Assembly: GCA_002269645.1 (NCBI GenBank)
Contig: NIVC01002140.1
Span: 112,400-176,399, forward strand
From: Macrostomum lignano
Lineage: Eukaryota
Direction: 5' to 3'
DNA: 64,000 nt
Shown here one piece after another: positions 2,414-64,000 of the stretch. Under the pieces are notes generated by a model. It was given only the letters and a program-made list of their open reading frames with translations, was not told the DNA's origin and did no database searches. The position numbers and the translations under genes are program-made. Numbering within the stretch: position 1 is the first letter of the stretch; each line of letters starts with the position of its first letter.

Positions 2414-2443
2414 TTTTTAACTAAAAATAAAATAAAATAAGAA

Positions 2444-3298
2444 ATGAAGCGGAAAAGTTCATATCATATCTCTGAACTAGAAAAGCTGGCGCAAGCAGAG
2501 AAACGAGTTACCGGTCTAATCAACAAAGAACAACAATCTTACAATGAATTCGTCCAAGCAGCCACCGAATTTCACAAACCCGGATACACAGAAGCGAAGA
2601 AAAACATCGACACTGTGAAGGAAGCAGTTGATGATATTCAAGAGAGCCAGTTGCAAAACACATTGGGTAAAATCCCATCTTCACCGGGACAACCACAGGC
2701 TCAGCAACCAGGACAACCAGTGCAGATGAATGTGACGGATAACTTTTTTGGCCCCGTAATGGTTGATGGAAAATATATTTTTGGAATTAGCGCCTGGTGA
2801 AAAGAAATTACCAAGGAACCGGTGGATTACAACATTGAAGTGACAAAGGAAAATATTTCAATCAATAAAGGTGCAGAAACTAAAAGAATCCCCTACACTA
2901 AAACTTTACTTGATTACTCGTACATGACTAAAAATCTAGAGAAAACGTCTGAAAAGCAGCTAAAAAATTACAAAGATCTTGTTACCTTTGCTTTAGAGAG
3001 GGACATAGACATTCTCAAGAACAACGGTGTTTTGAAAGTTTTACATGAAAACAGGATTGACTTGAACAGGTTTAGAAAATACAAATACTTTAAACAATGG
3101 TTTGGTTTGCCAGATCAGTTGGAAGTCATAAAATTTCTAGAACAACAACAGCAGCAACCACAACAACAGCAACAACCACAGCAACCACCACCTCCACAGC
3201 AACAAAAAACCCAGGTTGAACAAGTACTTGATCAACTTGACGCCGCAGAACCGATTGTTGTTTCGCAGTACAAAGATACAAACCCTGATACTTGGTAG
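2444..3298 (+). pseudogene. Viral ORF of unknown function (coiled-coil N-terminus, Q/P-rich C-terminus) split by one in-frame TGA at 2798-2800
   Basis: ORFs 2444-2800 and 2822-3298 share a frame (ISAW*KEITKEPVDY); divergent from the MCP gene across a short A/T-rich intergenic. Confidence 0.55.
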
Positions 3299-3581
3299 AC
3301 ATAATAATTGCAATGTTATTTACATTGCCCAAAACTGGTTTGAACTGCCAAATAAAACAATTAGAGGTAACTGTAATTTGATTCTCCTTTTCCCAACCAT
3401 ACCACAGGATCGACTGAAACGATTTTATAATGAGGTCATTGCCCCAGCTCACATTACATATCCAGCTAAGAACTCTAACAGAACAATATCACAGGAGGAA
3501 TTTGTTAACATATGCTATGAAAAGTGGAACCAACCTTATCAGTTTGTCATGATTAATAAGGAGAAAAGAATTTTACTTTAA
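3288..3581 (+). pseudogene. C-terminal fragment of an A32/FtsK-like genome-packaging ATPase
   Basis: LGRHNNCNVIYIAQNWFELPNKTIRGNCNLILLF...WNQPYQFVMI matches the GRH-N / sensor Q / IR-N region of Polinton ATPases; Walker A and B are absent, implying an upstream deletion. Confidence 0.75.
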
Positions 3582-3597
3582 TTTTTTATTTAAAAAA

Positions 3598-4074
3598 ATG
3601 TCAGTAAATTTTGCAGGTGAGTCAACTACAGGCAACAGCACTCTCACAACTTCCTTTCTTGACAAGCGCTACATTAACACTGATGAAGAGATCCCAGAGA
3701 TCAAACTGAATAAAAACAGACTGAAACAATTAGAGCGCTCCATGCACCAGTTGCAAATAAACATGGAAGATCTCAGGCTTAAAGTAGCTAGGCAGAAGTT
3801 TGAAAGTGATAAGCTTTATGTGCCGTTGTTAAACGCAACTAATGAACTTAGGTCAGAAATAACTTCGGCGGTCTCGCTAATCAACGGCTTGAGATCATCA
3901 GTTAATCTTCTGGGAAATTCCACTGATAGACGGATGCGTATTCTTGAAGGAGGAGTTTTCACAAACACAGCTAAAGTGAATAATTTAGAAGAGTTCATGA
4001 ACCAGTCAACAGCATTGCATGATAGAATTAAAGAAAACGTCGCAACCAACACAGTTAAAGTGAGGAATTTGTGA
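3598..4074 (+). CDS. Viral coiled-coil protein of unknown function, probably 3'-truncated at the rearrangement junction
   Basis: 158-aa ORF with TAA-T-tract-A-tract-ATG intergenic; its stop codon comes from the junction sequence at 4072-4074. Confidence 0.5.
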   Translation: MSVNFAGESTTGNSTLTTSFLDKRYINTDEEIPEIKLNKNRLKQLERSMHQLQINMEDLRLKVARQKFESDKLYVPLLNATNELRSEITSAVSLINGLRSSVNLLGNSTDRRMRILEGGVFTNTAKVNNLEEFMNQSTALHDRIKENVATNTVKVRNL

Positions 4075-4470: not shown

Positions 4471-5471
4471 TTAGAGCGCGCCAACCCGACGAGCCAAGCC
4501 ATGCACAGCCGCCCTGGCATCCGAGTCCCGAACAGATAGATAGCGAAACACTGAGTTGCCCTTCCAGTCGCCCAGCTTCTTGATCATCGGCAGTGGAACA
4601 CCGAGCTGCATGGCTGCCGTAGCGCCGCCCCGCCGCAGCCCGTGGCCAGTGAACTCGCGTGGCGACAAACCCGCCGATGTGCAGAGCGAACGAAGCCGGC
4701 TATCAAACCTGCTAGCCGTCAGAGGCAACCATCCCGCGGACGACCACGTGGAGAACAGGTGAACCGGACGCGGCGCCTGGCCGATTCGGTTTGTCCGTAG
4801 CTGCCGCTCGAGCGCACGGAACGGGCACAGGACACCCAAGCTTCCATCAGGCAGTTTCGGAAGAAACACTCGCTGAACTCGATCGCCAAACTGGTTGGTC
4901 TTCGAATGCCGCACAGTGAGCTCACAGTCGTACTCTGAAAAGACGATGCTCGATGCTGCCAGGTCGCACCACAGATCGAGCTGCCCCGATTGCGTCGTCA
5001 CATTCGCTTTTCGCAGCATACCCCACCAGGCTGCCAGAACTGCTGCCCAGAACGCGATGTCACTCTTCAGACGTTGGTCCAGGTGGGCGTGTAGCTTGAG
5101 GAGATCCGCGACTCTGAATGGCTCCCTTGAGCGCTGCTGCCGACTGAGACACCGGCGAAGACCACGAAGCACCAGCTTAACCATCGGCGACTCGCACGGG
5201 TCCGACCGGCCGAGAGCTCTGAAGTACAGCGAGACCGCGTTAGCATACGCCTGGCAACTCCGAAAGGCTGACAGCCGGGTGGACAGCTCGGCCAGGTATT
5301 CAGCCACGTGCACAGGCTCTGCCCGCAGCGGCGTCAGGTGCCGGGAATTGCAAAATCGCAGCCAAGACGCGAGCTGCGACCGGTAACTCCGCTTCGTGCG
5401 GGGCGCGTAGGCATTGCCCAGGATAAACGCGCAACGCTTGCTGAGGCGGTCGGGAGTCTGGCGCGGAGGGC
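4471..5471 (-). CDS. Tyrosine recombinase with N-terminal SAM-like domain; frame open upstream of the tracked ORF but with no early AUG
   Basis: Manual translation of 5472-5314 continues in frame as ...NAYAPRTKRSYRSQLASWLRFC... into the 280-aa ORF with R-K-HxxR-W-Y; preceded by a polypyrimidine tract and CAG acceptor at 5474-5472. Confidence 0.9.
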
Positions 5472-6149
5472 CTGTAAAATGAGAAAAACGGAGGCAGCAG
5501 GGCAGAAAGCATGGCTAGCGATCTCGTTAAAACAGCAGTCAACAGAGCCATACACCCGAAATAAAAAATCGCGCATTTTGTCCACGGCGTGCAGCCTAGA
5601 GCACGGGTCCGCAAAGACATGGTACCAGCCAGGCACATGAAAAGCGCGCACCTCAACCCCACGCCTAACAGCAATGAGCATGGCAGTCTGGAACAGCGGC
5701 TGCAACTCAGGCTGCCGACAGCAACCTCTGTTAATCATGCCAACAGCCGCACTAGAGTCGGAGTAGACCACGACCGAACTGTCATTTAAAAAGGCACCCC
5801 AGCGAACCATAGCCAGCAGCGGAACAATAGCTTCTTTGTACGTGATATGCTTGTCTTTAAACTTTCCTCCAGCATCCAGATCCCAATTGACGTACAGCCA
5901 ATCCACCATACCGCTACCATTGCGCAAAATGGCTCCGCCACCAGCACTGCTCGCATCGGTTTCGATGATCCAGCCGTTTGTGCAACTTCTCCAAAGCTGA
6001 AAATCAGGCAGCTTCAGAAGGGCACCTCGCCACCAGAGTAAAATACGCACAGTGTCAGCGGACACACGCACTTTGTGATGTGGCTTTTCCAGGGCATTAA
6101 GCAGGTCGAACAGGGGTCTTAGGAAGCAACTCCCAGCGTGCACCACCAA
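5334..6149 (-). pseudogene. DIRS-type RNase H domain of pol, detached from RT by a frameshifting deletion
   Basis: ETDASSAGGG, HITYKE, VYSDSSAA, FADPCSR motifs; different frame from RT at about 6150. Confidence 0.85.
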
Positions 6150-7120
6150 AGCGACGAAAGCTGTCGTTTCGAGAGACGCCTGCGCTGCGAAAAGTTAAGC
6201 AGTGTGGTGCGCATTTCCTCACACTTTTCCGCCGGCACACTAAGAACTCCACGGACAGTATCAATCTTCACACCGAGATACACCAAGCATTGCGTAGGTT
6301 CAACCACTTTGTTCCAATTGACACCAAAACCTAACTGGCGAACCAGCTTAATCAGCTCTTTCAGAGCATCCATACACTCTTTCTCGCTCTCGGCCGCAAC
6401 CAGAAAATCATCCAGGTAAACCGAAATATTGGCCACGCCGCGTCGCACCATCATCCTCTTGACCGCTTGAGTAAGCCGGTAGAAAATCTCGACCGAGGCG
6501 CAGCTACCAAAGGGTAGCCGGGTGTCGACAAGCCATGTCAGATCACGGTTGCCTTTAAAGCGCCAACCAATGCCGGTCGCCTGGTAATCATCCGGATGGA
6601 TCGCCACGCTTCTGTAAGCTTGCGACAAGTCAAGCTTAGCCATGAACCAGCCCTTGCCGATAGAGGCTGCAACCTTCTTGACGGACTCAAACCTGGGGCT
6701 CAGCTTCTTCGTATAGTTGTCATTTACCGAGTAGCCCGGAGGCGTGCTGCAGTCATGAATAAGTCGAACCTTCCCGTTATCCTTGGGAATTGCTCCCAGA
6801 GGGCTGACCATCGTAGGCTTCTTAGGCACAATCAAATACCTGCCATTCTCAATCTCTTCCTTAATTTGCAACTCAACAGCGCGATGAAAAGCAGAAGTAG
6901 ACATGTAATTGGCATTAAAAGTCTCACAAAGCCCTTTGCCATCAGTAATGCGAAAACCATTTGCGATGCCGTCTAGGATAAAATTCCGATCAGGGTCATT
7001 CTCAAGCTCAGAATCCCACGAACAAAAACGCAGGCGACCCCCTGCACTGCCAACGACAGGATTGTTAAAATTTAAAGCAGGCTGAGCATTAGGCAAAATT
7101 TTAGGATTAAAACAGAGCAT
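6119..7120 (-). CDS. DIRS/Ngaro reverse transcriptase
   Basis: KVRLIHDCS, LDLSQAYRSV, RLPFG, YLDDF, YLGVKID motifs. Confidence 0.93.
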   Translation of the reverse strand: MLCFNPKILPNAQPALNFNNPVVGSAGGRLRFCSWDSELENDPDRNFILDGIANGFRITDGKGLCETFNANYMSTSAFHRAVELQIKEEIENGRYLIVPKKPTMVSPLGAIPKDNGKVRLIHDCSTPPGYSVNDNYTKKLSPRFESVKKVAASIGKGWFMAKLDLSQAYRSVAIHPDDYQATGIGWRFKGNRDLTWLVDTRLPFGSCASVEIFYRLTQAVKRMMVRRGVANISVYLDDFLVAAESEKECMDALKELIKLVRQLGFGVNWNKVVEPTQCLVYLGVKIDTVRGVLSVPAEKCEEMRTTLLNFSQRRRLSKRQLSSLWWCTLGVAS

Positions 7121-7128
7121 CGCAGACT

Positions 7129-8247
7129 TCAGTTTTTTGTCGAATGGTTGGCCTCAGGGTGGGCCTCGAAACAGATGCGGCATACGTGCCGGAATTTGCA
7201 GCTCGACCGGAAGCACCCCCGGCGATTAAAGTGCAAGCAGATCTCTTCCCCGTCTGGCGTTCTGAGGCTCTTGGGGTCTATTGGTTTTTGAAAACGCTGC
7301 TGCCGTGGCTGGGGCAATGACTTGCTGACTCCATGGTTTGCTGGAGTTCCAGTTCTGATTAAGTGCTTAGCAACGAGTTGGAAAGACTCCTTGCCCCATC
7401 GCATGCCAGTTTCAGCTTGCCTAGTGCGGTAGTCCTCGTCAAAACGATTCACCTGCGCAAGGCCGAAGCCCGCGTCAAACAGCTCGCCAATCTGTATTGA
7501 GTAGCGTAAGTAATTCATCAAATCAGTCGTGTCGGCAGTTCCATTTCTACTAGTCACCAGGGCACCATCCTTGATCATCTGCATCATCAGCCTGCAATTT
7601 CCTACCAAATACTGCGCTGCCGTGATGCTATCTGGATTAGGTTTTCTGCTCTTGTAAGTGATTCGGCCACCAGAACCATTAGCCAGCACCACTTCCTGCT
7701 CAAAGCCGTCGAGGAAATCACGAATCAGGAGAGCCTTACGTCTACCAGAACACTCCATCCGTTCATTGGCCCTGTTCTGTGACAACAATCTGTCAAGCAG
7801 CTCATTGCCATTATCTGCTTGGTCTAATCCAGCATCATCACACCCATCAGGAAAGTAACTGGGGCCAGCAGGCTTGGCACACTCACCGCGATTCATAGGA
7901 CGCGTGGATGGACACTCGCGCTGCAGATCTCCGATCTCCCTCTTGAGTTGAGCGGCTTCCTTGCGTAGTTGCAACAGTCTGATCTCCTTCTCCGCTTTCG
8001 CGATGTCCTCGTCCAGGCCCGCCGCCGACTCCCGAGCCGCCTCCGTACTGATGTTGTCATCTGCTTCGGCTTCTTGCTTAGATTGCTCCATGTTCTGCAA
8101 CAGCGAATCTGTCCACGACTGGTCTGGGGCTGCGAGCAGGGCGCTGACAAGGTCGGCCTTGTTGCCCCGACTGCTTATGTTAGCGTGGGCACACAAGGCT
8201 TGCAGAGCCACCTTGCTCAGGTGCATAAGTTTGTCGCGGTCAGCCAT
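7129..8247 (-). CDS. Gag-like ORF1 (372 aa) with N-terminal SAP-like domain, coiled coil and C-terminal CCCH-type zinc finger
   Basis: ATG at 8247 (MADRDK); LSKVALQALCAHANISSRGNKADLVSAL fits the SAP pattern; CLHFNRRGCFRSSCKFRHVCRICFEAH. Confidence 0.85.
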   Translation of the reverse strand: MADRDKLMHLSKVALQALCAHANISSRGNKADLVSALLAAPDQSWTDSLLQNMEQSKQEAEADDNISTEAARESAAGLDEDIAKAEKEIRLLQLRKEAAQLKREIGDLQRECPSTRPMNRGECAKPAGPSYFPDGCDDAGLDQADNGNELLDRLLSQNRANERMECSGRRKALLIRDFLDGFEQEVVLANGSGGRITYKSRKPNPDSITAAQYLVGNCRLMMQMIKDGALVTSRNGTADTTDLMNYLRYSIQIGELFDAGFGLAQVNRFDEDYRTRQAETGMRWGKESFQLVAKHLIRTGTPANHGVSKSLPQPRQQRFQKPIDPKSLRTPDGEEICLHFNRRGCFRSSCKFRHVCRICFEAHPEANHSTKN

Positions 8248-8458
8248 TGCAAAAAAATGAGAAAAAAAATCAATACGCGCTTGCAGGCGGGTCAGCGACA
8301 GCCCGCACCGTATTAAATAAACGCCACCCAGGCCGCGGGCACGTGACCAAGGCCCGGCCCACCCCCCCCCCCCGCACCAACGCACAAGAGCCACGCCCCA
8401 CTGGTTTAACACCCAACCAAGCTACGCCCGGTCGGACCATTTTTGTGGGTGAAAAAAA

Positions 8459-9322
8459 ATGGAAGCTATAGCCGAAAGACTAAACAACATTGTTTCACAC
8501 TCCAAGGAGAGCATTCCTATTACAATAACTGGGCGAATTAATGACTCAAACGGGATGTTTGTTGAAAAATTAGAGCAGGCGATTCGCCTGGATCCAGGCG
8601 CTAATTACCATGTCTATCTTAACGACTTCACTGGTTGGTCAAACGTTCCCAATGTGATGGCAGCAAATAATAAGTTTTATTACAAATGGAAAGGTGCAGC
8701 AGCAGACCCTGTGGTATTCCATGTGAGCACGCAAAGTGTGGATACCTACAATAACTTTCTAGAAAATGTCTTTACTAAAAGAGGCCATTTTGAGACACCT
8801 GATGCGAGTAAGCCAGAGAAGAAACTGTTCCCTGCCAAACTAACCTATGATCTCACTGTAATGAGAGTGGTCATGCAAGTTCACAAAGATGCGGAGGTTG
8901 AGTTTAAAGATGACACTTGGTATAGGGAACTTGGATTCGAGAAGAAAGTTTATAAGGCAGAATCCGCGGCGCGGACCGCCACTCAAGCATCGGGGACTGT
9001 TAGAATGGTCCGGGAAAGTGTAAGCGGTTTGTTCTTAGCACCCAATATTGCAGACATTGTAAAGGGTTTGAATATTCTAATCAGAAGCAATCTCAGTCTT
9101 GATTGAGTATTTAAGGGAAAACGAACGAATATTTTGTACAACATCTCCAACTCTGTAGCTGGAGGACAGATGGTGGTAGAGAAACCAAATCCAGTGAAAA
9201 GAGTTGTATTGAGTAATAAGGAGATTCACGAGATTGTGCTACAGTTTGAGACTGAAGATGGGATGGGCGTTGATTTCAACGGTGAAGAGTTTGTACTGAC
9301 GTTGATCATTGAGAGAATGTGA
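8459..9322 (+). pseudogene. Polinton-type minor capsid protein (PX/penton), split by one in-frame TGA at 9104-9106
   Basis: N-terminal AIRLDPGANYHVYLNDFTGWSNVPNV..NNKFYY and C-terminal VVEKPNP...GVDFNGEEFVLTL patterns; the two tracked ORFs are in the same frame (SNLSLD*VFKGKRTNILYNIS). Confidence 0.8.
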
Positions 9323-30562: not shown

Positions 30563-30986
30563 CTGCGACAGTTGGGAGGCCGGGCGGACCCGTGTACTTT
30601 TATTCTTTAAACTATTTCAGCTTGCAGAGAGAGTGGAGTGCTCAGCTGCACTCATCATCTACATCTCCCAGCTTATCTAAATAAGCCACTCCCAGCAACA
30701 CAACAATGAAAGATGCGGACAAAAGCAAATAGTCAATCTAGTATTTTTAATCCCATTATGCAGCAATCTGCTCCCGTGTTGAGTGGGGCAGCGGAGGCGG
30801 ATGCAGCGGTGCGCACAGACTCAATTGAGCTGCTCAATGTGAGTAGGGAGAGAAATCCCAGTGCATCCAGCCACTAAGCTGCTCGTGAGATGACTCAGAG
30901 TGATTGTAATGAAGCAATCGGAGGTATTAGGAGTGAAAATATATTTCTCAGCAACTTGTATTGCTTCTCTTGCCGTCAGCCTGCCG

Positions 30987-31360
30987 TCAGTCTACCTGTC
31001 TGGCTGCCTACCTGTCTGGCTTGTCTACCTGTTTGGCTGCCTACCTGTCTGGCTTGTCTTCCTGTCTGGCTTGTCTACCTGTCTGGTTGCCTACTTGTCT
31101 GGCTGCCTACCTGTCTGGCTGCCTACCTGTCTGGCTTGTCTACCTGTCTGGCTGCCTACCTGTCTGGCTTGTCTACCTGTCTGGCTTGTCTACCTGTTTG
31201 GCTGCCTACCTGTCTGGCTGCCTACCTGTCTGGCTGCCTACCTGTCTGGCTTGTCTACCTGTCTGGTTGCCTACCTGTCTGACTGTCTACCTGTCTGGCT
31301 TGTCTACCTGTCTGGCTTGTCTACCTGTCTGGCTGCCTACCTGTCTGGCTTGTCTGCGTG
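30987..31360. repeat. 16/17-bp intronic minisatellite (CTACCTGTCTGGCT[GC/TGT])n
   Basis: Tandem units in PKA-R intron 1. Confidence 0.93.
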
Positions 31361-31452
31361 ACTGTCTGTCTACCTATCTGCCTACCTGTTTATTAGCCTT
31401 AATTCTCCCACTTCTACCAAGTCGCTACCCGAGTCAGCCAAGCGAGCCCCAC

Positions 31453-32187
31453 CTTCTGCTGGAAGGTCTCCATGTCCAGCGACCAGAGCACGCCGTCAGT
31501 CTTGGCGATGACCGTGGCAGCCCTGGGGCAGTAGTACATGAGCGCCAGCTCGCCAAAGGAGCCCTCGTGATTGTAGGTGAGCACATGCCGGCTCTCGGAG
31601 CTCGCCTTGTCCCTCACAAAAGCCTCAAACACGCCGCGCTCGATCACATAGAAATTGTCGCCCTCGCCGTCTTGCTCGATGATGACCTCGCCGGCCGTCA
31701 CCGGCTTCTCCTCCATGGCGTCGATCACGTGACCCAGGCCGATTCGGTCCAGGCTGCGGAACAGCAGAATGTGCTTGACGGTCTCCATGAGCCGGCGCCG
31801 CTGCTCGTCGGACTTCGGCACCACCCGGCGCTGGTAGGTGGCCTCGTGCTTCTCCGGGTCGAAGGAGGGCGCCGCCACGCTCACCCGGCGCCGGCTGCAG
31901 GCGCCGCAGACGCGGGCAGCGGCGGCCGAGTCGGGCAGGGCGGCCAGATCGTCGTCGTCGTCAATTTCAGCGCCGGAGTCCTCGCGGCGCAGTTGGCGCT
32001 CGGCGGAGTCGGAGGAGGCGACGGCAGCGGCGGCTGGGCCGGCGGCCTCGGAGGACTGACCGAGGTCGAGCCGCTGGAAGTAGGCGGAGGCGAACTGGAC
32101 CAGATTGGCCGGCTGGGCCCGCAGCACCGCCACGGTGAAGTCCTGGAGCAGCTCGGTCAGGCCGTCTGGCACGGTGAATGACGACAT
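31453..32187 (-). CDS. PRKAR2: PKA RII regulatory subunit, exon 1 (D/D domain, inhibitor site, CNB-A); spliced protein 406 aa
   Basis: RIIa D/D GLTELLQDFTVAVLRAQPANLVQFASAYF; RRVS autophosphorylation site diagnostic of type II; GSFGELALMYYCPRAATV; donor AAG|GTGGGG after 31453; 735 nt, phase 0. Confidence 0.95.
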
Positions 32188-36612: not shown

Positions 36613-38999
36613 CTGCAAAAAAGCGATGAAACTCAAAACTGTAGGCTGTACGTTCATGCATGACGTCGGCTGCCTGACCGGTTAACCGCTTTATTTTTAC
36701 AGATTTGATTGCTTCGCTCAGAGAAATAACGAAACGGAGAGATGATGGGTTTCGACCTTCGGGCTCCTTGTTAGGGAAGCCTTCGGGCCTCAGGCTCAGA
36801 AATAAATCGATTAGAGACCTGGCCCCCCACTCCTGTCAGATGGTCAGCCCCATGGTAGCTTGATCGTGTGGCGAGCAGTCTAGGTCCTATAGCTAAGAGA
36901 GGGACAGCGAGAGACAAGCAGGGAGAATTTTGAAAGTAGAAATTAGCTAATCCGCAGATCAACTAACTTGCTGCCACCAGCCCGTGCGCCCTGGCTCACC
37001 ACACCGGGACTCTCGAAATCGGGCTTCCGACTAGAAGGGGCTTTGCACTTACCTGCCAACTAGTGTCTTTTTGCTGTCAATCTCGAAGTCATAGCCGATG
37101 ATAAGGGACACTGCTGGGACTAGATCGCGTTGGCCATGCAGGTACAGAGGGGACTTGTGCAGGGGATTCTTGCGGTGGCGAGTCTATGGGGGAGCTACAT
37201 GTACTATTACATTGCTAAATACGAAGATATGTACTTTTAGCCTTCAACGCGCAAACTAGCCTCTCATAGCGCTGATGATAGGCTAACTCGAACTTCAGAG
37301 ACCGCATGATTCATTTACCCGAGCCGCTTGGCTACCCTAGAGTGCACAAAGTACATCTCTGGCGCCGATTCTGCACTTTTGGCAGTTTTGCTCACTGATT
37401 TGTTAGATTGGTCGACTGAGAACTGCCTTGCCATTGGTCCACTGTGACCGGCGCCTACTAGCTTAGCTACTCATCTGAGCCATCGGCGAACAAAGAAATA
37501 AAGCCGACAAAGATAACTGTTAGATTTAACCTTCTCCTTAGTTCACTTCACACTTTTGATTGAATTGGAGTCTTAGACTACTAGCAGTATTATTGAATGA
37601 TTCCTGCCTCAGCAACAGCACTACTGAACAAAATGAGCAAAAGTGTGCGCCTAATTCAGCTACTGCAACAGGGGACAAAAAAGGGATCACCCAATCAAGC
37701 AAGTCTAGGTAGCCTCTCACCCAAACAATCAGAAACTCAACAGCCGGAGACCAGGTATTCCACAGTGACCGAATCGGCTCGATGCTCTGCAGCTGTAGAC
37801 TCGGGATGATGCTGTCACAATCTTCGCTGTTAGCTAGCAGGTGATGCTCTTAACTGGATGTTCGCTGCTGTCGACCGGGGACTCGTCCTTGATGATGATG
37901 GGGGAAGTTGCAATCCGGGGATCAAGAAACGACGGTCGTGCTCCGGGAACCAGAAGTTGCGCGCTGGGCCCGAGCCAAAGTAAGAAGAAGTAGTGTCCGA
38001 GCGGGCCAAAAACTCCGGTTTAAATAGCCGCCAACTGGACCGCAGTTTGTTATAACGGAACACGTCGATTCTGATTGGCTGAGCCGTTTTGTTAAAATGA
38101 GCGCCGAATTTTCTGATTGGCTAAGCTCGTTGCTACCCAGAATCACGTGACCGAGAGATCCTATCAGTTCCCACAGGGTCGTAAAAAGATGACAGGTGCG
38201 GCCATAAATCACTCAAAATCGCAACAAAATGATTTATGACTTTTCGCGTAGGATTGACAGAAATTAATGAAAAAATATACATTAGAAAGCTCTTATTAAA
38301 TAGAAAGTGAAGATAATGAAGAGAAATCGCTAATCGCTAATCCCAAGGTACTTTTAGGGGTAAAACGCATAGCTGTCAAAGCTGTCACACGCTTGAGTGA
38401 ATCCGAACAATAGGCTCTGACCTCATAAATCTTGATGGCCTGTCAAAATGATGAGAAAAAAGCTACCGCCCGCATCCTCTCAGACCATCTGGCGCCCGCT
38501 TCAACACTGAGTGAGGCGCAGGTGGCTGTCAGATCAGCTTCGAAAGCGATGATTTATGACCCAAAAAGCTGCGCCTATGTTATTATGACTACTAGTATGG
38601 CCAGACATTATATCTAGTATAGATTCTATGAAAATTCGCAGAAAAAGGATAAAAATGCCCACTGCCCACTGTTAGTAGGCAAGTAAGTTTAGAGCCCATG
38701 TGCTAGCGCGGGATTTGGGAAAAAGTGCGTCCTCATCAGAGAATTTAACTTCAAGCAGCGTTCATCAGCACGTCTAGAACATGGATCCCTAACAGCAATC
38801 CGACGTCGGGGGCGACTTTATGATGACGTATGACGTCGTTTTTCGTAGATATAACTAGCAATCTTCGCCCCCCGATGGGGGACATCTGGATAGAACTTCT
38901 GTTCTCTACAAGTAAAAAAAAACCGCCAAATAGAGTCTTCACAAAGACAACAGAAAAACTGCTCAAATAAAGCGCAATACAAAAAGAAAACATCCCAAG

Positions 39000-40290
39000 A
39001 CAGCAAGCATCCCCCCTCCTCCCAGATAGCAAGCACCCCCAGATAGCAAGCACCCCCAGATAGCAGCACCCCCAGATAGCAAGCACCCCAGATAGCAAAC
39101 ATCCCCCAAATAGCAAGCATCCTCCAGATAGCAAGCATCCTCCAGATAGCAAGCATCCCCCAGATAGCAAGCATCCCCCAGATAGCAAGCATCCCCCAGA
39201 TAGCAAACATCCCTCAGATAGCAAGCATCCCCCAAATAGTAAGCATCCTCCAGATAGCAAGCATCCCCCAGATAGCAAGCATCCCCAAGATAGCAAGCCT
39301 CCCTCAGATAGCAAGCATCCCCCAAATAGCAAGCATCCCTCAGATAGCAAGCATCCCCAAATAGCAAGCATCCCTCAGATAGCAAGCATCCCCAAATAGC
39401 AAGCATCCCTCAGATAGCAAGCATCCCCAAATAGCAAGCATCCCCCAGATAGCAAGCATCACCCAGATAGCAAGCATTCCCCAGATAGCAAGCATCCCCC
39501 AAATAGCAAGCATCCTCCAGATAGCAAGCATCACCCAGATAGCAAGCATCCCCCAGATAGCAAGCATCCCCCAGATAGCAAGCATCCCCCAGATAGCAAG
39601 CATCCCCCAAATAGCAAGCATCCTCCAGATAGCAAGCATCACCCAGATAGCAAGCATCCCCCAGATAGCAAGCATCCCCCAGATAGCAAGCATCCCCCAG
39701 ATAGCAAGCATCCCCCAGATAGCAAGCATCCCCCAAATAGCAAGCATTCCCCAGATAGCAAGCATTCCCCAGATAGCAAGCATCCCCCAGATAGCAAACA
39801 TCCCCCAGATAGCAAGCATCCTCCAGATAGCAAGCATCCCCCAGATAGCAAACATCCCCCAGATAGCAAACATCCCTCAGATAGCAAGCATCCCCCAAAT
39901 AGCAAGCATCCTCCAGATAGCAAGCATCCCCCAGATAGCAAGCATCCCCCAGATAGCAAGCATCCCCAAGATAGCAAGCCTCCCTCAGATAGCAAGCATC
40001 CCCAAATAGCAAGCATCCCTCAGATAGCAAGCATCCCCAAATAGCAAGCATCCCCCAAATAGCAAGCATCCTCCAGATTGCAAGCATCGCCCAGATAGCA
40101 AGCATCCCCCAAATAGCAAGCATCCTCCAGATTGCAAGCATCGCCCAGATAGCAAGCATCCCCCAAATAGCAAGCATCCTCCAGATAGCAAGGATCCTCC
40201 AGATAGCAAGGATCCTCCAGATAGCAAGCATTCCCCAGATAACAAGCATCCCCCAGATAGCAAGCATCCCCCAGATAGCAAGCATCCTCC
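39000..40290. repeat. 18-bp satellite (GATAGCAAGCATCCCCCA)n, about 70 copies; short second array at about 42398-42500
   Basis: Tandem periodicity; source of the MLAIWG/DACYLG pseudo-ORFs. Confidence 0.97.
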
Positions 40291-52564: not shown

Positions 52565-55500
52565 TTAATTATCTTCACTTATGGCTCTCTCACACAGCTG
52601 CAGTGTCTCAGAAATCCTATCTCCGAATGGATCCTCAACTTCTCGGGTCTGGGCGATGATTTCGGCAGACTGGCGAGCCTCCAACAAGTACTTCTTGCGC
52701 TCCTGCCAGTTGGGCTTGTGCTCCATCTCCTCGCTGGCGATGAGGTTGTCAATGTACTCGACCACGCTAAGGGGGCATGGCCGAAGTGCCCATTTATCAA
52801 GCTCGTTGAGACACTTGCGGATAGTGACGATGTCGTATGTTAACTCGCTGTGCTTCTCCTTCAGATCTTGTCTCATGGCTGAAATCAGCTGCGTCTTATC
52901 CTTCCTATCTTTCACACTCTCTTCGTACTTTTTACAGATCGTCTCTACGTCCACAAGTTCCTCTTGCGTGGTGTGCACGAAATAATGATCGGCTGATTCG
53001 TGCTCCTTCCAGTTGCACTTCTTCGGACATACAGTGCAGCTGCCAAAAACAGTGATCGCCCGACACTTCCTCTGAATATCTTCGGGGCCCCTGGAGCAGT
53101 CATTGTGACAGGTGTTCTCACAGACCTTGCAGATCATGGCGTAGCGGCCTGGTCTAGTCATCTTCTTCACTTTCTTCGGCACCATCACTTTTCGTTTCTT
53201 GTTCATGTCCGCATCCTTGATCACAGCGTCCAAGGTTTTTACCAGCTCAAGCTCTTGTTCAATGCAAGAAATTTGATCGAGACACGCATTTACTTTGAAT
53301 AGAAGCTGGTCCTTCACGTTTTCCAGCCTGTCACGGTGTCTTAAAACGTCACGAGTAATTTTCAGTGATACGCTTTCTGACTGCTTCAACCAATTGAACA
53401 GCTCGTCATAGCTTATAAAGGATTGCTCCCAGTTGAGATGGTTTTGCTTCAGCATCATTTGGTGTTTTCGCTCTTCAGTCGAGCAGTCATGACTTTGTGG
53501 TTTTGATTCTGAGTTGTCGGAAAAAAGAACACCGTTGTTGAAGCTCTGGTAATTTTTACAGGGTACATTGTCCTCTCTGAGTGCAGCTAAGGCCTGTGGC
53601 TCACCGCTGTCAGCGAATGTCAAGATCGGAAGAATTAACTTCTCAACATCCTTTGCGAATAACGACAAAATGAGATTAAAGATATACTTCTGTGGCGCAG
53701 TTAGTCTGTTCTGCGACGCCTTCACAACAAAGCCGATCGCGTGCAGGACGCCTGTCATTCTCGGGATGCAGCTGCTATCTTCTCCGAGAATTCGAGCAAT
53801 TTTCTTTACCGCTCTCTGATCCTCCTCAAAACCCCGAGTGTCTCCAAAACCCGGGGTGTCGATGACAGTCAGTGGGCAGTCCAGAGCACTCTTTCCAGAG
53901 CAGCATCCTCCTGAAGTGTCCACCGGGTGAAGGGTGTATACTGACACCTTTGACGTCTGAGAATGAGCCTGATTGGGCTTACTCATTCGCTTAGAGGCAG
54001 TGGAGCTTGACTCTAATGAGCTGGAATCGGCTTCAGAAATGAGTCTCAGCCGAAAAGGATCCTTATACTGCACTTTATAGAAAGCATTGGCGATTGCATT
54101 GACAAACCTGGACTTTCCCGTTCCAGTCTCGCCCACGACTAGCATATATTTTGAATGCTCTGTCAAGTTTTCCTTGCTCTCGCCAATATCAAACGACTCT
54201 GGGCAGTTACAGTCGCCCTCGGGACAATGGCAGCTCTCAGGCAGCTTTAGAAGGCGCTTCTTGAGCTGAAAAATTTCTCCCGGAAAAGTTTCATCACCCT
54301 CTTTCTTCAGCGGTTTTGACTCGCACAGGACCTTACGAGCGTACTCGGAGCAAAGCTTCAGAGGATTAGTCTCGAAGTGAACACTCTTGGATTCCTCCGA
54401 GTCGCCAAATGCAGTCATCGTCGAGATCTTGGCTTTGAACTTTGTGCCTGGTTCGAGGTCGTGAATATCAATGCTCGTTTTGTCAGTGACTTTTGTGAAG
54501 ACCAAGCACTTCGAGCTCTTGCTCGCCTGGTAGACTTTTATTATGTATTGTACTGGGAGACCAAGGTCGCACTTCACAGCTGACCACGAAAGCTTTGACG
54601 TAGTAGATTTGATCTCTTCGCACACAATATTCTTCGGTGCAAGTGGCAGTTCCAGAGGACACCACTGTTGCTCTTTTCTGTACAGCTTGGTGATATGGAT
54701 CCGATTACTGTCGCTACGTCTAGACTCGCTTACCAGAGCAACAGCCACCTGCGAACCAAGGATGCATTCGTTTCTTTTGGCAACTTCGATTAGCTCATTC
54801 GCGAGTTTGTTTAACGTGTCATGATCTTCCGAGTCAATCCAGGTGTCGGCGCTTCGTTCCACAAAAAATTTATGAGTCACTTTATTCAGAAAAAGCCTCA
54901 AGTCCTTCAGGTAGGGAGATGCATCTGGAAAGGTCAGCTGAGCCAGTAACTTCTGATTGGCTGAACTTTCAAACTGCTGTTTGTCTATTGAATCCTTGAT
55001 GAGCTTGATGCCCACTGAACTCAGTTGAGCTGCCAACGCCTGCAGAGCGATGCACTCCCTCTCTCGATTCGAAATCCAGCCAAGAAGTTGAGCGGGTCCG
55101 AACGGAGAATTGTCTCGGTAATTGGTCAACAGCTTGGCGATTTTGTCGCATCCTTTCTTGTGCTCTCGAGCACCTGGCAGAGTCTTCAGCAGCTTTTCCG
55201 TGTATCTGGTCTTCATCTTCTCAACTTGGTTTACAAACTCTGAAAGCTCTGCGCGCTGCGTCTGCCACGGACTCGATGCCAGCACTCGTTGCTGTGTTTC
55301 GGCCGCGCTGATGACATCATTGAGCTTCTGAAGATAGTCGCCAGCTTCGTTCAGCTGCTCATCCGTGATCTTCCGCTTCAGCATAACTACTTTGCCTCCA
55401 AGCGTGCTCAGGGGTGTCAAGTATGCCACCAGTGGAGTCTTGGCTCTGTCGCTTGAGAACCTGCTCACGCATCCAAACGCCTCTCGCAAAGTCGTCGGTG

Positions 55501-56166
55501 GAGATTCGACATCGAAGTCACCGAAGTAGCGACACTTCACCCTGTCATACACGCTGTCGTCAAATTCGCTGCCGTACTTGGGCGGCGCGTCGGACTCACT
55601 GAAGGCAGCTTTCAGAGCGGACACCTTCGACTCGAGACTCTCCTCCGACGCTGAGGCCTCGCCAAGCGGCTCTCTCTCCTTTTCGAACACGAGAAAGGCA
55701 TTGGCTCCGAACTTGATGCCCGTCACCACATGGGTCGCCGGGGTGTCCGCCAGCTGTTGTGGAAACTCGACGCCTCCACTTGGCTCCAAGTGCAGCTCGT
55801 CGAACCTTGTGACAATCCGGTAGGCCAGAGTGACTTCCTCAGAGTTGAGACTGGTCTTTGAGTCGTTCAGGTACCGACCAGAGCCTTCGACCTCGGTGTT
55901 GCCACACAGGAAGCCGAGCTTCAGATCCGGACTGAGTTTGAGCAGCTTCGCCTTGTCCGAAAATGTGCACTCTTTTTCGATGCTGATAGTTGGAGTTGGA
56001 CTCACTTCCACTTGACTTTTGGTCATGTTGAGCTTTGCGGCTTGCGACCACAGCTTGGTCCCGGTGATGAAGCCGTCGTTTCGCGCATCGTACAGCGTGC
56101 CGAGAGCGACGGGCCGGCCCAGACAGGCCGTGCGGAGGTCCTTGTCACGAATAGCTTCGCTACGAT
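52565..56166 (-). CDS. Stonustoxin/neoverrucotoxin-like MACPF-CDC domain + thioredoxin-like region + FN3 + septin/AIG1-like GTPase + Cys/His-rich domain, exon 2
   Basis: ACLGRPVALGTLYDAR...GTKLW, ATHVVTGIKFGANAFLVF (SNTX-family signatures); FN3 PLAPKN...LSWS...LEPGTKF; G1 GETGTGKS, SQT, DTPG, TFAD; acceptor TTATTTTAG ending at 56167. Confidence 0.9.
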
Positions 56167-57126
56167 CTAAAATAACGAAATTGTGAGTAGTTCTACATGC
56201 AGTGCCAATAGTGCACTTATTATGGTGTCTCCGCTTCTGCACCCAGCAACAGCATGTATAGCAAGGTTGGAAGCAGCTAATATTTAGGTAATCTTTTAGG
56301 AATCTATAAAGCACCCACCACCTGGCTGGCTACCTTGCTGTGAGTGAGGCATATTTCTTTGACCATAACTTTCATAGTTGCTTCGCTTTTTTCAAAGTGT
56401 TCGGCAGCCGATCGTACTACTGCTGATAGACTCATCGAACCTAGGTTTTGCCGCCTAGATTCAGACAGATAGTCACTGAGTTAATTTGCGAGAGATTCAT
56501 AAGAGGCAGCTTATGGATGATAAAATTGACAGGATATCAGAGTAAGCTGAAATACCGATTGCTAATTCCGTGTGAAATTAGTCCTCCTTTCATACTACTC
56601 AATAGTATGAAACGCTCAGAATCAGATAAATACTTAATTAGCCTAAATTAGCCTACAAAACTTACCAGTAAACGCGTTGAATCGCGTACTATTAGAATCT
56701 GCAGTTTTATCAGGCAAGCCCTGCTCCCAAACAAACATGCTTAAACATACGAGTAGAAAATTAACACCCAATAACAGTGAATACCTAATCTCGATATGAT
56801 TTTCAGTGAGAGTGATACTATAACCCCACACGGTCATGAGCTCAACTGGACTACTTTTTACGCAACAAGCAAGCTGAGAAGTGTCGGGATCGATACGAGC
56901 TACAAAAGTGAATGCCTAAATGGCAGAAGCTTACTCAGTACAAGTCTGCAAGTCGGCTTAATGAGCCAATTTTTTGTTTCTGCCCTACTTGATGCTTCTT
57001 TTCTGCAGCAAGAATGTTGCATAAAAAGCTTTCTTCACTGAACACCGAAAGATGCATGTAAGTTAGCCACTCGTTTTGAGGGCTGCGGAGTGTGCAAGCG
57101 ACTGCGTATTACATCAGGCTGCTCAC

Positions 57127-57190
57127 CAGTCGATCGACCTCTGTTGAACTTCTCCTTCAGGCTCATCTTGACGGATGTAACCTTCTTCAT
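57127..57190 (-). CDS. Exon 1 of the MACPF-GTPase gene (MKKVTSVKMSLKEKFNRGRST); spliced protein about 1221 aa
   Basis: ATG at 57190, donor G|GTGAGC at 57126; phase 1 completes GAT (Asp) with exon 2. Confidence 0.75.
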
Positions 57191-60345: not shown

Positions 60346-60769
60346 CTGCAAAAAAGCGATGAAACTCAAAACTGTAGGCTGTACGTCCATGACGTCTGGC
60401 CGTCTGACCGGTAAAGGCTTTATTTTTACAAAATATTTATCGCTCAGAAAAATTACAAAGCGAAGAGAATTTAACTTCAAGCAGCGTTCATCAGCACGTC
60501 TAGAAAAAGGATCTCGAACAGCAATCCGACGTCGGCGCGACTTTTTGATGACGTCGTTTTCTGTCGAAGCAATGCCAAAAAGTATGTATTTGTCATCGAA
60601 CGTCGATAAACCTCGAGAACGTTGGTCGACGCTGTCGACATCGGATTGCTGCTGTACGGGGGTGGCTTCAAGACGTATCTTGTACGCACATATGCAACCA
60701 GCTGTACGGGGATGGCTTCAAGACGTGTCATGTCATGCACATCTGCAACCAAAAGCAAAACATGCTCAC

Positions 60770-61205
60770 GAGTGTAGTGCTGCCGGAACACCGAGTTACG
60801 AAAAGCGGATCCACATTTCTGAGTGATGTTACCGCTGCATGTTTTAAAGCAATCACTCTCACTCAGTTGTATTTGCCCGTAGGAGCTCCCACAGAAGCAG
60901 TGAAAACCGGCCTGAACTCCAAAGTACGGGTGACTGCCGAGAGCGCACAGGGCGCTGCACAGCTCGTGTGTCATGCTGTGGCTGGAGGCCCTGAACAGCT
61001 CTAGTTGATGAAGACCGACACCGCCAATCTTGGTGATGTCGTAGTTCCTCTGGTCAGTCATCTGCCACAGACCGTTGACGGCGTCCAGGTAGCAGCCGAC
61101 GTAGGTGAAGTTGCGGCCCCTGCCGGCGCTCGAGGCGATGCCGATGACTCGACAGGCGAGCAGCAGGCCGGCTGCCAGGAGGATGAAGCTGTTCAGACAT
61201 CGCAT
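60770..61205 (-). CDS. Secreted WSC + PAN/Apple-like protein, exon 1 (signal peptide + WSC); spliced protein 222 aa
   Basis: Hydrophobic N-terminus; YVGCY...MTHELCSALC...YFGVQAGFHCFCG...CFKTCSGNITQKCGS WSC pattern; donor C|GTGAGC after 60770, phase 1. Confidence 0.88.
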
Positions 61206-62029
61206 GATCAGCTGCGTCTTTGTGAAATCAAGGATTATTGACTTACCTAAGACTTGAAATTATTTTTTGAGTTGGCTACGGATTCGAGCTTTATTAGCGA
61301 TCTCAAGCCAATTATTTTAAAAGCCTTAAGAGTTTCTACTTTCAGAGCATTTGAAATCCCAATGCTATTCATTAAAATTGCCATTCAGCCCTCGTTTTTG
61401 ATTTTTATTTAGAAAAATAAATCAAATTGAGATCTATTGATGCTCAACAATTGAAAGCAGACCCAAGAACCATGTGGGTCCTTAAGCAGGCGATGTTTAG
61501 ATTTTTCGAAAAAATACAATTTTTGGTAAATTAGATAGGCCGATGCCAGGCAACGGACGAGCTGCTCCCATTATATCTACTCCGAAATTCATAATGCGTT
61601 TACGATGTACGTCAGGTTAGCGTGAAACACAACCCTGCACAGATTTATAGGCAGGTATGGTTAACATACATTATAGCTAGTTAGTGCACTCGTATGCAAG
61701 TAGCATGCATGCAGTTCTGTGGTTCCGGTTATCCAGTTATTCCGGTTCATGGCTATGAGGAAGAGTTTAAACCTAACGGAACATTTGGTTTCTTGCTTTA
61801 GTGGCCAGGCACTTAAGAAGGCGTTCATCTATACTCAGAAACTGCTCCATGGTGTGATGTCTATACTCGTACAAGCTGTTGAAAACCGCGGATTTTTTAA
61901 CACAATAGATCAGAAGACTTTCTGAGACTATGCAAACACTTACAGCATCAGGACAGTAATCTAACTAAATAATTTTTAGTATATAGGAAGATGAGATTAA
62001 TTTGCAGCTGTTAAATAAAATGAAAAACA

Positions 62030-63060
62030 CCCGGCCATGGACAGAAACACCCAGCCATGGACAGGAACACACAGTCATGGACAGGAACACTCAGCCATGG
62101 ACAGGAACACTCAGCCATGGACAGGAACACCCAGCTATGGATAGAAACACCCAGCTATGGATAGAAACACCCAGCCATGGACAGGAACACCCAGCTATGG
62201 ATAGAAACACCCTGCTATGGACAGGAACACCCAGCTATGGATAGAAACACCCTGCTATGGACAGGAACACCCAGCTATGGATAGAAACACCCAGCTATGA
62301 ATAGAAACACCCAGCTATGGATAGAAACACCCAGCTATGGATAGAAACACCCAGCTATGGATAGAAACACCCAGCTATGGATAGAAACACCCAGCTATGG
62401 ATAGAAACACCCAGCTATGAATAGAAACACCCAGCTATGGATAGAAACACCCAGCCATGGACAGGAACACCCAGCTATGGATAGAAACACCCTGCTATGG
62501 ACAGGAACACCCAGCTATGGATAGAAACACCCTGCTATGGACAGGAACACCCAGCTATGGATAGAAACACCCAGCTATGAATAGAAACACCCAGCTATGG
62601 ATAGAAACACCCAGCTATGGATAGAAACACCCAGCTATGGATAGAAACACCCAGCTATGGATAGAAACACCCAGCTATGGATAGAAACACCCTGCTATGG
62701 ATAGAAACACCCAGCTATGGATAGAAACACCCAGCTATGGATAGAAACACCCAGCTATGGATAGAAACACCCAGCTATGGACAGAAACACCCAGCTATGG
62801 ATAGAAACACCCAGCTATGGATAGAAACACCCAGCTATGGATAGAAACACCCAGCTATGGATAGAAACACCCAGCTATGGATAGAAACACCCAGCTATGG
62901 ATAGAAACACCCAGCTATGAATAGAAACACCCAGCTATGGATAGAAACACCCAGCTATGGACAGGAACACCCAGCCATGGACAGGAACACCCAGCTATGG
63001 ACAGGAACACCCAGCCATGGATAGAAACACCCAGCCATGGATAGAAACACCCAGCTATGG
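62030..63060. repeat. 20-bp satellite (CCAGCTATGGATAGAAACAC)n, about 52 copies
   Basis: Tandem periodicity. Confidence 0.97.
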
Positions 63061-63739
63061 TAGTTGCACAAAAAGCCCATAAATTAAACCTCCAGCCAAG
63101 TTAAAACCCAACTCGCAGTTTGAAAGAAATTGCATATTTATTTCCCATACTGGACAGGAGTGAGAGCGCACGTTTTTATTTATTGATTTTTGACTGCGTT
63201 TATAACGGCTATAGCAATAATATTATGATGTAAAAAAATCTAAAAAGTTAAACGGGATGATGACGGATAAAAACAGTTTGACTGAGAGCGCTTTAAACAG
63301 AAACACGCTTAGCACAATACAAATTATCAAGGAGTTAAAACAAAAAGAATGCTTCATATAACGAGTAGCTAACGATTGGTTGATGAATGATGCTGGCCTA
63401 AAGTTAAAAACTGAGTTTTAATTAGGTAGGCATAAATAATTTAGTAGAGTATTCATAAGCTCAAAAATGTAAGCCTTCAAAGAAATTATGAATTATTACG
63501 GTGCAACTTATTATTATATCGCGATTACTGAGAAGTCGAAGTTAATTAGGAGAAATTCGAGAGTAAATTACATTGAAAAAGCAATTGTCTTAATAATAAT
63601 AAAGCAGCCGCAAATGTGGAATGAACTGAGTGAAGATTAAGCGTAAGCTACACTTCGTGAATATAATATCAGTTTAGTTATAATAGCAGTCAAATTAATA
63701 ATAATAATACTAAATACTTCGTTACACCTGCCCTAATGG

Positions 63740-63965
63740 GCAGATGTGCAACCGACAGCTCAGCCGCAGCCATTGCTTGGCGCATCTGAAGGCTGCGTAC
63801 GGCTGTTCAGTCCAAGGACTGGGGGTCGCCACACCCTCAATTACCCCAGCTAATGCTGGCACCATTTTACAGCTGGTGAACTGAAGCAGTGCAGAATTAA
63901 TTGCCTTGCTCAAAGACACCATGCAGTTGTTATAGTGGTATCGGGAATCGAACCACGACCTTCAA
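63740..63965 (-). mobile_element. tRNA-derived SINE
   Basis: B-box GGTTCGATTCCC (63943-63954 on minus) followed by the GTGTCTTTGAGCAAGGCA...CCAGCTGTAAAATGG core typical of metazoan SINEs. Confidence 0.6.
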
Positions 63966-64000
63966 GGTAACTTTTCAAGGTAAAAAACTTTTTAAGTTTC

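Follow-up and report, generated by a model that had tools for sequence, protein, structure and literature searches.

The stretch of DNA considered here comprises 64,000 nucleotides of the Macrostomum lignano genome (assembly GCA_002269645.1, contig NIVC01002140.1, positions 112,400 to 176,399 of the forward strand). It is called the window below, and positions are counted from its first letter. The window carries on its minus strand a two-exon gene whose spliced product, a protein of 1,221 amino acids, joins a pore-forming half of the stonustoxin (SNTX) type to a GTPase module. The fusion gene is intact, is maintained by selection and belongs to the SNTX branch of the pore-forming MACPF/CDC superfamily.

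Gene Structure and Integrity

The fusion gene is laid out as follows.

57127-57190, minus strand: exon 1, with the ATG at 57190, 21 codons plus 1 nt, and the donor GTGAGC
56167-57126, minus strand: intron of 960 nt, phase 1, with the acceptor ttattttag before 56166
52565-56166, minus strand: exon 2, encoding residues 22-1221 and the stop codon

The main open reading frame (ORF), of 1,249 codons at 52565-56314 (minus strand), contains no in-frame ATG upstream of LGRPxxLGxLYD, the conserved start of the MACPF domain, and an upstream exon is therefore needed. The product of this first exon is a basic leader, MKKVTSVKMSLKEKFNRGRST. All domains from MACPF to the C-terminus are held by exon 2, a continuous 3.6-kb stretch that gave 100% identity across 1,200 amino acids in tblastn. 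Since they lie within one exon, the fusion is real with no splice prediction involved, and the objection that transcripts might be split between its halves does not apply. The initial annotation had described a protein of 1221 residues with a basic 21-residue first exon and no signal peptide, and the spliced model agrees with it on each point. No signal peptide was detected in the product (the first 30 residues show a mean Kyte-Doolittle hydropathy of -1.29 and a net charge of +6), nor was any transmembrane segment, the top 19-mer having a Kyte-Doolittle value of 1.56.

The closest homologue is Mlig008863g1 of M. lignano, with 72% identity at 100% coverage. It is annotated with a matching structure, namely a basic exon of 22 codons plus 1 nt and a phase-1 intron of ~952 nt. 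The basic first exon is common only to the fusion gene and Mlig008863; the other family members do not have it. The ratio of nonsynonymous to synonymous substitution rates (dN/dS) against Mlig008863g1 is 0.21 overall, 0.07 in the G domain with its linker and 0.36 in the MACPF domain, while dS is saturated in the Cys/His domain. Every testable domain is under purifying selection, with dN/dS of 0.07-0.36.

The divergence from Mlig008863g1 is sharply mosaic (54950-56110, minus strand, of the window vs. 11040-12200 of locus L001). The MACPF and helical domains, ~1.15 kb in all, have 88-99% DNA identity to Mlig008863g1 and a dS of 0.12-0.21. The remaining coding sequence is 55-79% identical with a dS of >1.4, and no alignment is obtained for the intron and flanks. 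Such a pattern suggests that the pore-forming cassette alone has recently undergone gene conversion or recombination. The closest homologue has a second copy, Mlig008863g2 (P0002), which encodes 944 amino acids with an out-of-frame tail inside the G domain; either this paralog has a frameshift or the assembly is in error there.

Stonustoxin-Like N-Terminal Half

The features of this half are listed below, with the boundaries of the SNTX domains following PMC8704401. TMH1 and TMH2 denote the two helical clusters that become membrane hairpins.

55370-56140, minus strand: SNTX-type MACPF/CDC domain (~residues 31-287), with the signature ATHVVTGIKFGANAF
55844-55972, minus strand: TMH1 (~residues 87-129)
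55538-55675, minus strand: TMH2 (~residues 186-231)
55019-55363, minus strand: stonustoxin helical (FAT-like) domain (~residues 290-404), PF21109, four long model helices aligned to 4wvm
54650-55015, minus strand: thioredoxin-like (THX) domain (~residues 406-527), alpha/beta fold in the model, Foldseek alignment to 4wvm_B
54374-54640, minus strand: fibronectin type III (FN3) domain (residues 531-619), PF00041 and PDB FN3 matches

A phmmer search of PDB sequences identified stonustoxin beta (4wvm B, E 6e-32) and alpha (4wvm A, E 2e-30). The Pfam profile MACPF_SNTX (PF24674) scores 27.6 bits, just above its cut-off of 27, and Stonustoxin_helical (PF21109) scores 28.4 bits against a cut-off of 27. 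The fn3 profile (PF00041) reaches 35.8 bits in a region where model confidence is moderate. The THX profile PF18078 gave no match in the fusion protein at E<=0.1, though it is present in homologues, so this domain is visible only by structure. An AlphaFold2 model of residues 23-530, built with 54 homologues, has a predicted local distance difference test score (pLDDT) of 84 and a predicted template modelling score (pTM) of 0.84. In Foldseek the model matched 4wvm_B with an E of 7e-28 and a template modelling score (TM) of 0.73 over 505 columns, followed by other MACPF/CDC proteins. Because the model superposes on 4wvm_B over this length, the MACPF/CDC, FAT-like helical and thioredoxin-like domains of stonustoxin are all predicted to be present, in the same order as in stonustoxin and neoverrucotoxin. 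The SNTX-type MACPF, THX-like and FN3 regions proposed from the sequence by the initial annotation are thus recovered by Pfam, phmmer, AlphaFold2 and Foldseek together, and a check for the MACPF fold and its TMH regions found both in place.

A MACPF/CDC fold consists of a bent central beta-sheet with a helical cluster on either side, TMH1 and TMH2. In the model, long strands occupy residues 108-124 and 145-163 of the MACPF domain, and both of the prospective hairpin clusters are present, at 68-100 and 177-208. T166, H167, V168 and G175 are invariant among the 54 homologues. TMH1 is near its stonustoxin counterpart (LKLGFLCGNTEVEGSGRYLND in the fusion vs. LGVSFLGGLVEVGGSAKYLNN in stonustoxin), and TMH2 keeps its length relative to stonustoxin. 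Stonustoxin and neoverrucotoxin further share with the fusion the LGRPxxLGxLYD start, the ATHVVTG..YGA signature and the lack of a signal peptide.

The fusion also differs from stonustoxin. No SPRY/PRY match was found in the fusion protein, and FN3 with a GTPase, stalk and Cys/His module of ~530 residues stands in that position. The fusion has a diverged TMH2 and the basic 21-residue leader exon. Stonustoxin forms a haemolytic alpha/beta heterodimer, which the fusion protein is not known to do.

GTPase Module and C-Terminal Half

The remainder of the protein has the following features.

54161-54373, minus strand: linker or pre-G region (~residues 620-690), with the Macrostomum-specific motif CHCPEGDCNCPE
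53480-54160, minus strand: G domain of the septin/Toc34/AIG1 class (~residues 691-917), with a low-complexity insert at ~741-749
54110-54133, minus strand: G1 motif GETGTGKS (residues 700-707)
Within the G domain, minus strand: SQT (residues 757-759), G3 DTPG (791-794) in DTPGFGDT (791-798), G4 TFAD (871-874) and G5-like FNNG (897-900)
53210-53479, minus strand: two long helices (~residues 918-1007), the predicted outward arm of a helical stalk (model helices 399-431 and 438-488)
52955-53191, minus strand: beta-rich Cys/His domain (~residues 1014-1092), placed between the arms of the predicted helical hairpin
52568-52948, minus strand: return helix and C-terminal helical bundle (~residues 1095-1221), with the conserved motif ALRPxPLSxxEYIDxLI

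The motifs GETGTGKS, DTPGFGDT, TFAD and FNNG are conserved across 130 homologues. The complete G1-G4 set announced by the initial annotation stands as regards G1, G3 and the Asp of G4, which is invariant in the 130 sequences; G4 itself is the non-canonical TFAD, not NKxD, and does not contain the Lys. What we take to be the AIG1-type motifs (GxxGxGKS, DTPGxxDT, TxxD and NNxA) can all be read in the fusion, and its DTPGxxDT, its T..D G4 and its NNx(A/S) G5 presumably resemble those of GIMAP proteins.

The assignment of the G domain to a septin/AIG1-like class proved correct at the level of fold and profile and failed at that of Pfam. AIG1 (PF04548) reaches 24.5 bits against a gathering threshold of 27, Septin (PF00735) reaches 21.0 bits against 26.2 and covers the N-terminal ~75 profile positions, and MMR_HSR1 is likewise sub-threshold. 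Dynamin_N (PF00350) is not significant at E 0.05, no stretch passing. Profile comparison with the PDB found septins (1e-7), Toc34 (1e-6), GIMAP4 (1e-5) and GIMAP7 (5e-4). The best Foldseek matches of the G domain were Toc34/Toc33, with E from 6e-7 to 1e-4 and a target TM of ~0.5, and also septin 9. Its predicted fold is closest to the septin/Toc/AIG1 superclass of dimerisation-activated GTPases. With GIMAP/AIG1 proteins, Toc34/Toc159 and septins the fusion shares the P-loop, a hydrophobic residue at the position of Ras Gln61 and helical extensions after the G domain. It differs from the class in its TFAD G4 and its sub-threshold Pfam scores, and its GTPase module forms a large family of its own, which includes the fish protein 'si:ch73-170d6.2'. 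None of the PDB matches to the model has the long helical hairpin, the beta domain with ten Cys/His or the conserved ALKPxPL..YIDLLIESE tail.

An AlphaFold2 model of residues 520-1221, built with 130 homologues (pLDDT 83, pTM 0.74), contains in order FN3, the G domain, two long helices of 33 and 51 residues and the beta-rich Cys/His domain, followed by a return helix of 53 residues and three further helices. The ten residues of the cluster are C1034, C1037, C1041, H1042, C1045, C1056, C1065, C1068, C1072 and H1077. Each is kept in >=90% of the 130 homologues, the cyanobacterial ones included, and most are invariant in alignments A1 and A4; the cluster presumably binds metal. The coiled coil and Cys/His cluster of the initial annotation correspond to this predicted helical hairpin and these ten residues. 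Foldseek of the C-terminal model gave no PDB fold match for the stalk and Cys/His part.

In the bacterial dynamin-like proteins LeoA and BDLP, as in the fusion, a long helical stalk comes after the G domain, but the global Foldseek match is weak (TM 0.15-0.18), and the LeoA match, with a root-mean-square deviation of 33 Å, was rejected as noise. The PADLOC models of bacterial anti-phage defence returned only P-loop matches of 25-100 residues (mad8, LeoBC, PtuA; E from 1e-3 to 4e-6), those to LeoA/LeoBC lying only around the P-loop.

Distribution and Modularity of the Family

The full-length protein was used to scan 1.84 billion cluster representatives. The scan returned 3,848 matches at E<=1e-3, which include SNTX-only relatives and the GTPase family, and 848 at E<=1e-30; many are single end-to-end alignments. 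Among 314 proteins fetched, 102 contain both the SNTX-type MACPF and the GTPase, so at least 102 fusions exist. Besides three further M. lignano genes (72%, 42% and 36% identical), they come from many teleosts, reedfish, sharks, sawfish and environmental eukaryotes. Fungal fusions from Sordariomycetes and Glomus comprise MACPF_SNTX, DUF7656, the G domain and the same Cys/His cluster. The initial annotation had expected uncharacterised architectures of this kind in other animals, and they indeed occur there, as well as in fungi. In fish, neighbouring gene numbers suggest tandem copies.

Across the family the FN3 spacer ranges from 1 to 14 copies. The G1 motif is intact in 93% of 86 fused proteins, DxPG in 95% and CxxC...CHxxC in 93%, a degree of conservation that suggests selection for GTP binding within the fused proteins. 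The TMH2 motif IPxISIEG is conserved from stonefish to environmental homologues, and most non-flatworm fused homologues retain the SNTX-type TMH2 motif. None of the SNTX-branch N-termini examined carries an N-terminal extension or leader.

The SNTX cassette is followed by different C-terminal partners, namely PRYSPRY, galectin, B-box, MORN or FN3-GTPase; variation of the C-terminal domain in the SNTX branch is also described in PMC4859500. The GTPase module, in turn, exists by itself at ~550 amino acids in a very large family that extends to amphibians, reptiles, hagfish, sponges, cnidarians, molluscs, fungi and cyanobacteria. It also stands behind 1-14 FN3 domains, behind Ig domains and behind the RING/B-box/coiled-coil of TRIM proteins (P0095). 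Since it is found behind both the SNTX cassette and the TRIM array, the module takes the place of PRYSPRY in two types of protein, stonustoxin-like and TRIM-like. When family members are ranked by similarity of the GTPase module, fused and unfused proteins are interleaved at 245-280 bits, the Macrostomum paralogs standing apart.

The cyanobacterial module is 33-34% identical to the flatworm one, keeps every motif and is as close as the fish homologues, which suggests transfer between domains of life. Its carriers are Pseudanabaena, a Cyanobacteriota metagenome-assembled genome (MAG) and Microcoleus anatoxicus (L006 4384-9899; L005 5572-7593; P0079). In Pseudanabaena the module follows a dynamin-type G domain, and a second dynamin-family gene adjoins. 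In L005 the other strand carries a gene for an NB-ARC ATPase close by. An intronless, complete ORF of 1,189 amino acids with the order SNTX-THX-FN3-GTPase was found on a 1.3-Mb contig of a 'Nitrospirales' MAG (L008 3970-7539). It was not counted as a bacterial fusion: the DNA is gene-poor, with 2 ORFs of >=120 amino acids in 13 kb, and the contig is probably eukaryotic and mis-binned as bacterial.

Full-text searches of the literature found no paper describing an SNTX-GTPase fusion, in line with the earlier statement that no mechanism had been described. In databases the fusion proteins are labelled 'uncharacterized' or, in fish, 'stonustoxin subunit alpha'. Both domain families were already known; what is new here is an SNTX-branch MACPF protein with a putative nucleotide switch as its recognition domain.

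A Second Family Member in the Window

The window contains another member of the GTPase family, so that two lie within 36 kb.

15196-16899, minus strand: ORF of 567 amino acids with GTPase, coiled coil and Cys/His cluster, without MACPF

This ORF shares 31% identity with the fusion's C-terminal half and 85-86% with the 3' exon of Mlig029040g1, an annotated SNTX-FN3-GTPase fusion gene (L003 10001-15885) with an intron of ~2.4 kb between its cassette and GTPase exons. In the window copy (15196-16923, minus strand) a TAG stands in that phase after the equivalent acceptor, four codons before the ATG. No second MACPF-coding sequence was found anywhere in the 64-kb window, including upstream of 15196-16899. 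Because the TAG closes the frame and no second MACPF exon is present, the ORF either stands alone as a copy or is what remains of a broken fusion, in effect a snapshot of a fusion made or broken at an exon boundary. In Pfam searches it scores 27.5 bits for AIG1, above the threshold of 27, and 38 bits for Septin, covering only profile positions 6-91 of 280. A PQLIDS repeat lies just upstream of it.

The initial annotation had suggested that this GTPase-only paralog tunes the fusion protein. That proposal is not supported: the ORF corresponds to the 3' exon of Mlig029040g1, a comparison of three M. lignano loci showed no conserved pairing of a GTPase-only ORF with a fusion gene, and no support for a regulator role of this ORF was found. 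As to family expansion, M. lignano has at least three further paralogs in addition to the pair in the window.

Proposed Mechanism

The interpretation that we favour, tentatively and short of calling it probable, is a GTP-gated assembly of pores in the cytosol by the MACPF-GTPase fusion. The protein would be made and would act inside the cell. On binding GTP, the C-terminal modules would pair or oligomerise, probably at a target surface to which the Cys/His domain attaches, and this pairing would bring the MACPF cassettes into alignment and to a higher local concentration. The cassettes could then assemble a pre-pore and insert TMH1 and TMH2 as beta-hairpins, and the resulting pore would lyse a pathogen, the compartment that holds one or even the host cell. 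Hydrolysis of GTP would reset or limit the assembly.

An intracellular site is plausible because the GTP motifs are conserved in 93-95% of the fused proteins and the Cys/His cluster is presumed to bind metal, and because the TRIM and cyanobacterial contexts of the module are cytosolic. The missing signal peptide is no basis for this view, since the SNTX-branch N-termini examined show no N-terminal extension. The G domains of the septin/Toc/GIMAP class are switched on by nucleotide-dependent dimerisation and carry a hydrophobic residue at the position of the catalytic Gln of Ras. In the fusion, the G3 motif DTPGF places a Phe at the Ras Gln61 position. As the class dimerises on nucleotide and Phe replaces the Ras Gln, we infer activation by dimerisation in the manner of that class, with GTP binding driving the pairing or oligomerisation of the modules. 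The MACPF signature and TMH1, which closely follow SNTX, and the preserved length of TMH2 support the pore-forming part of the scheme. The PRYSPRY domain of stonustoxin, whose place the module takes, has been described as the first contact with the surface of the target cell and occupies the position of the Ig domain of CDCs or the C2 domain of perforin (PMC8704401).

The behaviour of the family, with its paralogs, probable tandem copies and a tract like that left by gene conversion, resembles that of immune genes. Two published observations are relevant here. In carp infected with Ichthyophthirius, the skin mucus contained 3.5-fold more of a partial, FN3-containing neoverrucotoxin-like protein (PMC5910588); this is the only link to infection and an indirect one, as that protein may or may not include the GTPase. 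Horizontal transfer among teleosts has been reported for genes named 'stonustoxin subunit alpha', together with immune genes (PMC12107551). One of the transferred genes, with a 3,804-nt alignment, fits the long form in length; that work names these genes by their best HHpred hits and does not mention a GTPase.

The scheme may also be compared with the interferon-inducible immune GTPases that coat membranes (GBPs, IRGs) and with the cytosolic pore-forming executioners gasdermin and MLKL. These share with the fusion only the proposed logic, in which oligomerisation driven by a nucleotide would concentrate an activity harmful to membranes in the cytosol. No relationship in sequence or fold is known to the G domains of GBPs and IRGs, to gasdermin or to MLKL, and the fusion unites pore former and GTPase in one polypeptide.

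Several points weigh against the scheme. The Macrostomum TMH2 has a net charge of -6, contains a PP pair and is without the IPxISIEG motif, which makes the pore competence of the Macrostomum proteins uncertain. The G4 motif TFAD is without Lys, and nucleotide specificity and affinity are what we infer from the motifs. Dimerisation is extrapolated from Toc34, septins and GIMAP, to which the similarity is modest (TM ~0.5, Pfam below cut-off), and the stalk-and-tip geometry would follow from the order of the secondary-structure elements in the model and from that only. The comparison with PADLOC gave matches only at the level of the P-loop. Several MACPF proteins are non-lytic, and lytic activity in the fusion family is a prediction. 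Finally, stonustoxin is without a signal peptide and yet is found in venom (PMC8704401), and the carp relative occurs in mucus (PMC5910588), so extracellular action is possible.

Alternative Explanations

It is unlikely, if conceivable, that the MACPF cassette does not lyse membranes at all. It would then be a membrane-binding or scaffolding part of a GTPase engaged in membrane remodelling or trafficking, with a stalk and paddle of the dynamin type; astrotactins, BRINPs and Torso-like are examples of non-lytic MACPF proteins. In its favour are the diverged TMH2 of Macrostomum, the G domain with its long helical hairpin, weakly matched to LeoA overall, and the cyanobacterial homologues, which have dynamin-family proteins as fusion partners and as neighbours. 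However, TMH1, the MACPF signature and the overall fold are very near those of the lytic stonustoxin, most fused homologues outside the flatworms retain the SNTX-type TMH2 motif, and the LeoA match reflects no real global similarity.

Nor is it likely that the fusion protein is, like stonustoxin, a toxin or defensive secretion that is kept in gland or epidermal cells, leaves them without a signal peptide and acts outside on prey, predators or parasites, with the GTPase serving only before release (in storage or auto-inhibition) or simply as a binding domain. GTP is scarce outside cells, and the retention of GTP-binding motifs in nearly all of the fused proteins fits poorly with such a life. 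The ten conserved Cys/His would suit a reducing compartment if they bind zinc, the same module is fused to the cytosolic TRIM RING/B-box, and in cyanobacteria it has no evident export signals. On the other hand, FN3 domains are usually extracellular, and the two cases named above, the leaderless venom component stonustoxin (PMC8704401) and the FN3-containing carp mucus protein that rises on infection (PMC5910588), speak for a released toxin.

Very little credence can be given to an artefact (an assembly or annotation error, a decaying pseudogene, or two adjacent genes read as one), since, for all that M. lignano has the truncated copy Mlig008863g2 and the second family member in the window seems broken or a stand-alone 3' part of a fusion, this is effectively refuted by the continuous ORF, an uninterrupted exon of 1,200 codons from MACPF to the C-terminus, by dN/dS of <0.4 in all computable domains and by a co-linear architecture in at least 102 proteins of several phyla, many of them single full-length alignments. 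The probability left over from GTP-gated pore assembly and from these alternatives belongs to mechanisms that were not considered.

Other Elements of the Window

Near the left end of the window, the ORF at 1127-2413 (minus strand, 428 amino acids) has a weak match to the double jelly-roll capsid-like profile PF21738 (E 6e-5, below the cut-off), and the neighbouring ORFs at 2822-4074 and 8459-9106 (both plus strand) have no Pfam matches. One of these neighbours, at 2822-3298, is in DNA of low GC content (39% at 2001-4000). Together these ORFs may be the remnant of a Polinton-like or virus-like element. Between them, at 4471-8412 (minus strand), a DIRS-like retroelement has a tyrosine recombinase (Phage_integrase sub-threshold), a reverse transcriptase (RVT_1, 64.6 bits) and a SAP-containing gag-like ORF; a partial copy of its recombinase is found in the opposite orientation at the window start (146-694, plus strand).

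Long tandem-repeat arrays at 17016-17889, 38751-40285, 30900-31400 and 62025-64000 are open in multiple frames. The satellite at 62-64 kb, with a period of ~20 bp, is 88-93% identical to the DNA immediately 3' of Mlig008863g1. An exon of the type II regulatory subunit of cAMP-dependent protein kinase, with RIIa and the first cNMP-binding domain, lies at 31414-32187 (minus strand, 58% GC). The ORF at 60477-61205 (minus strand, 242 amino acids), 3-4 kb upstream of exon 1 of the fusion gene, has a hydrophobic N-terminus and a carbohydrate-binding WSC domain (PF01822, 46.8 bits).

Implications

In the MACPF/CDC superfamily, targeting is normally passive and is carried out by C2 in perforin, domain 4 in CDCs and PRYSPRY in stonustoxin. 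A broader and rather doubtful proposition sees in the SNTX-GTPase fusions of animals and fungi one conserved class of MACPF executioners that work in the cytosol, are gated by GTP and serve to lyse pathogens or to kill cells; pores would thus be formed under regulation by a route that had gone unrecognised. In the same proposition, the GTPase, stalk and Cys/His module would be a general oligomerisation engine plugged into MACPF, the TRIM RING E3 and a dynamin-like G domain, from cyanobacteria to vertebrates. As now labelled in databases, the fish members are read as secreted toxins. If the proposition is true, a nucleotide switch of the septin/GIMAP class would let the cell control pore assembly enzymatically and reversibly in its interior, a principle new to a superfamily that has been studied very well. 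It would also provide the first biochemical handle on a very large, unstudied family of GTPases.

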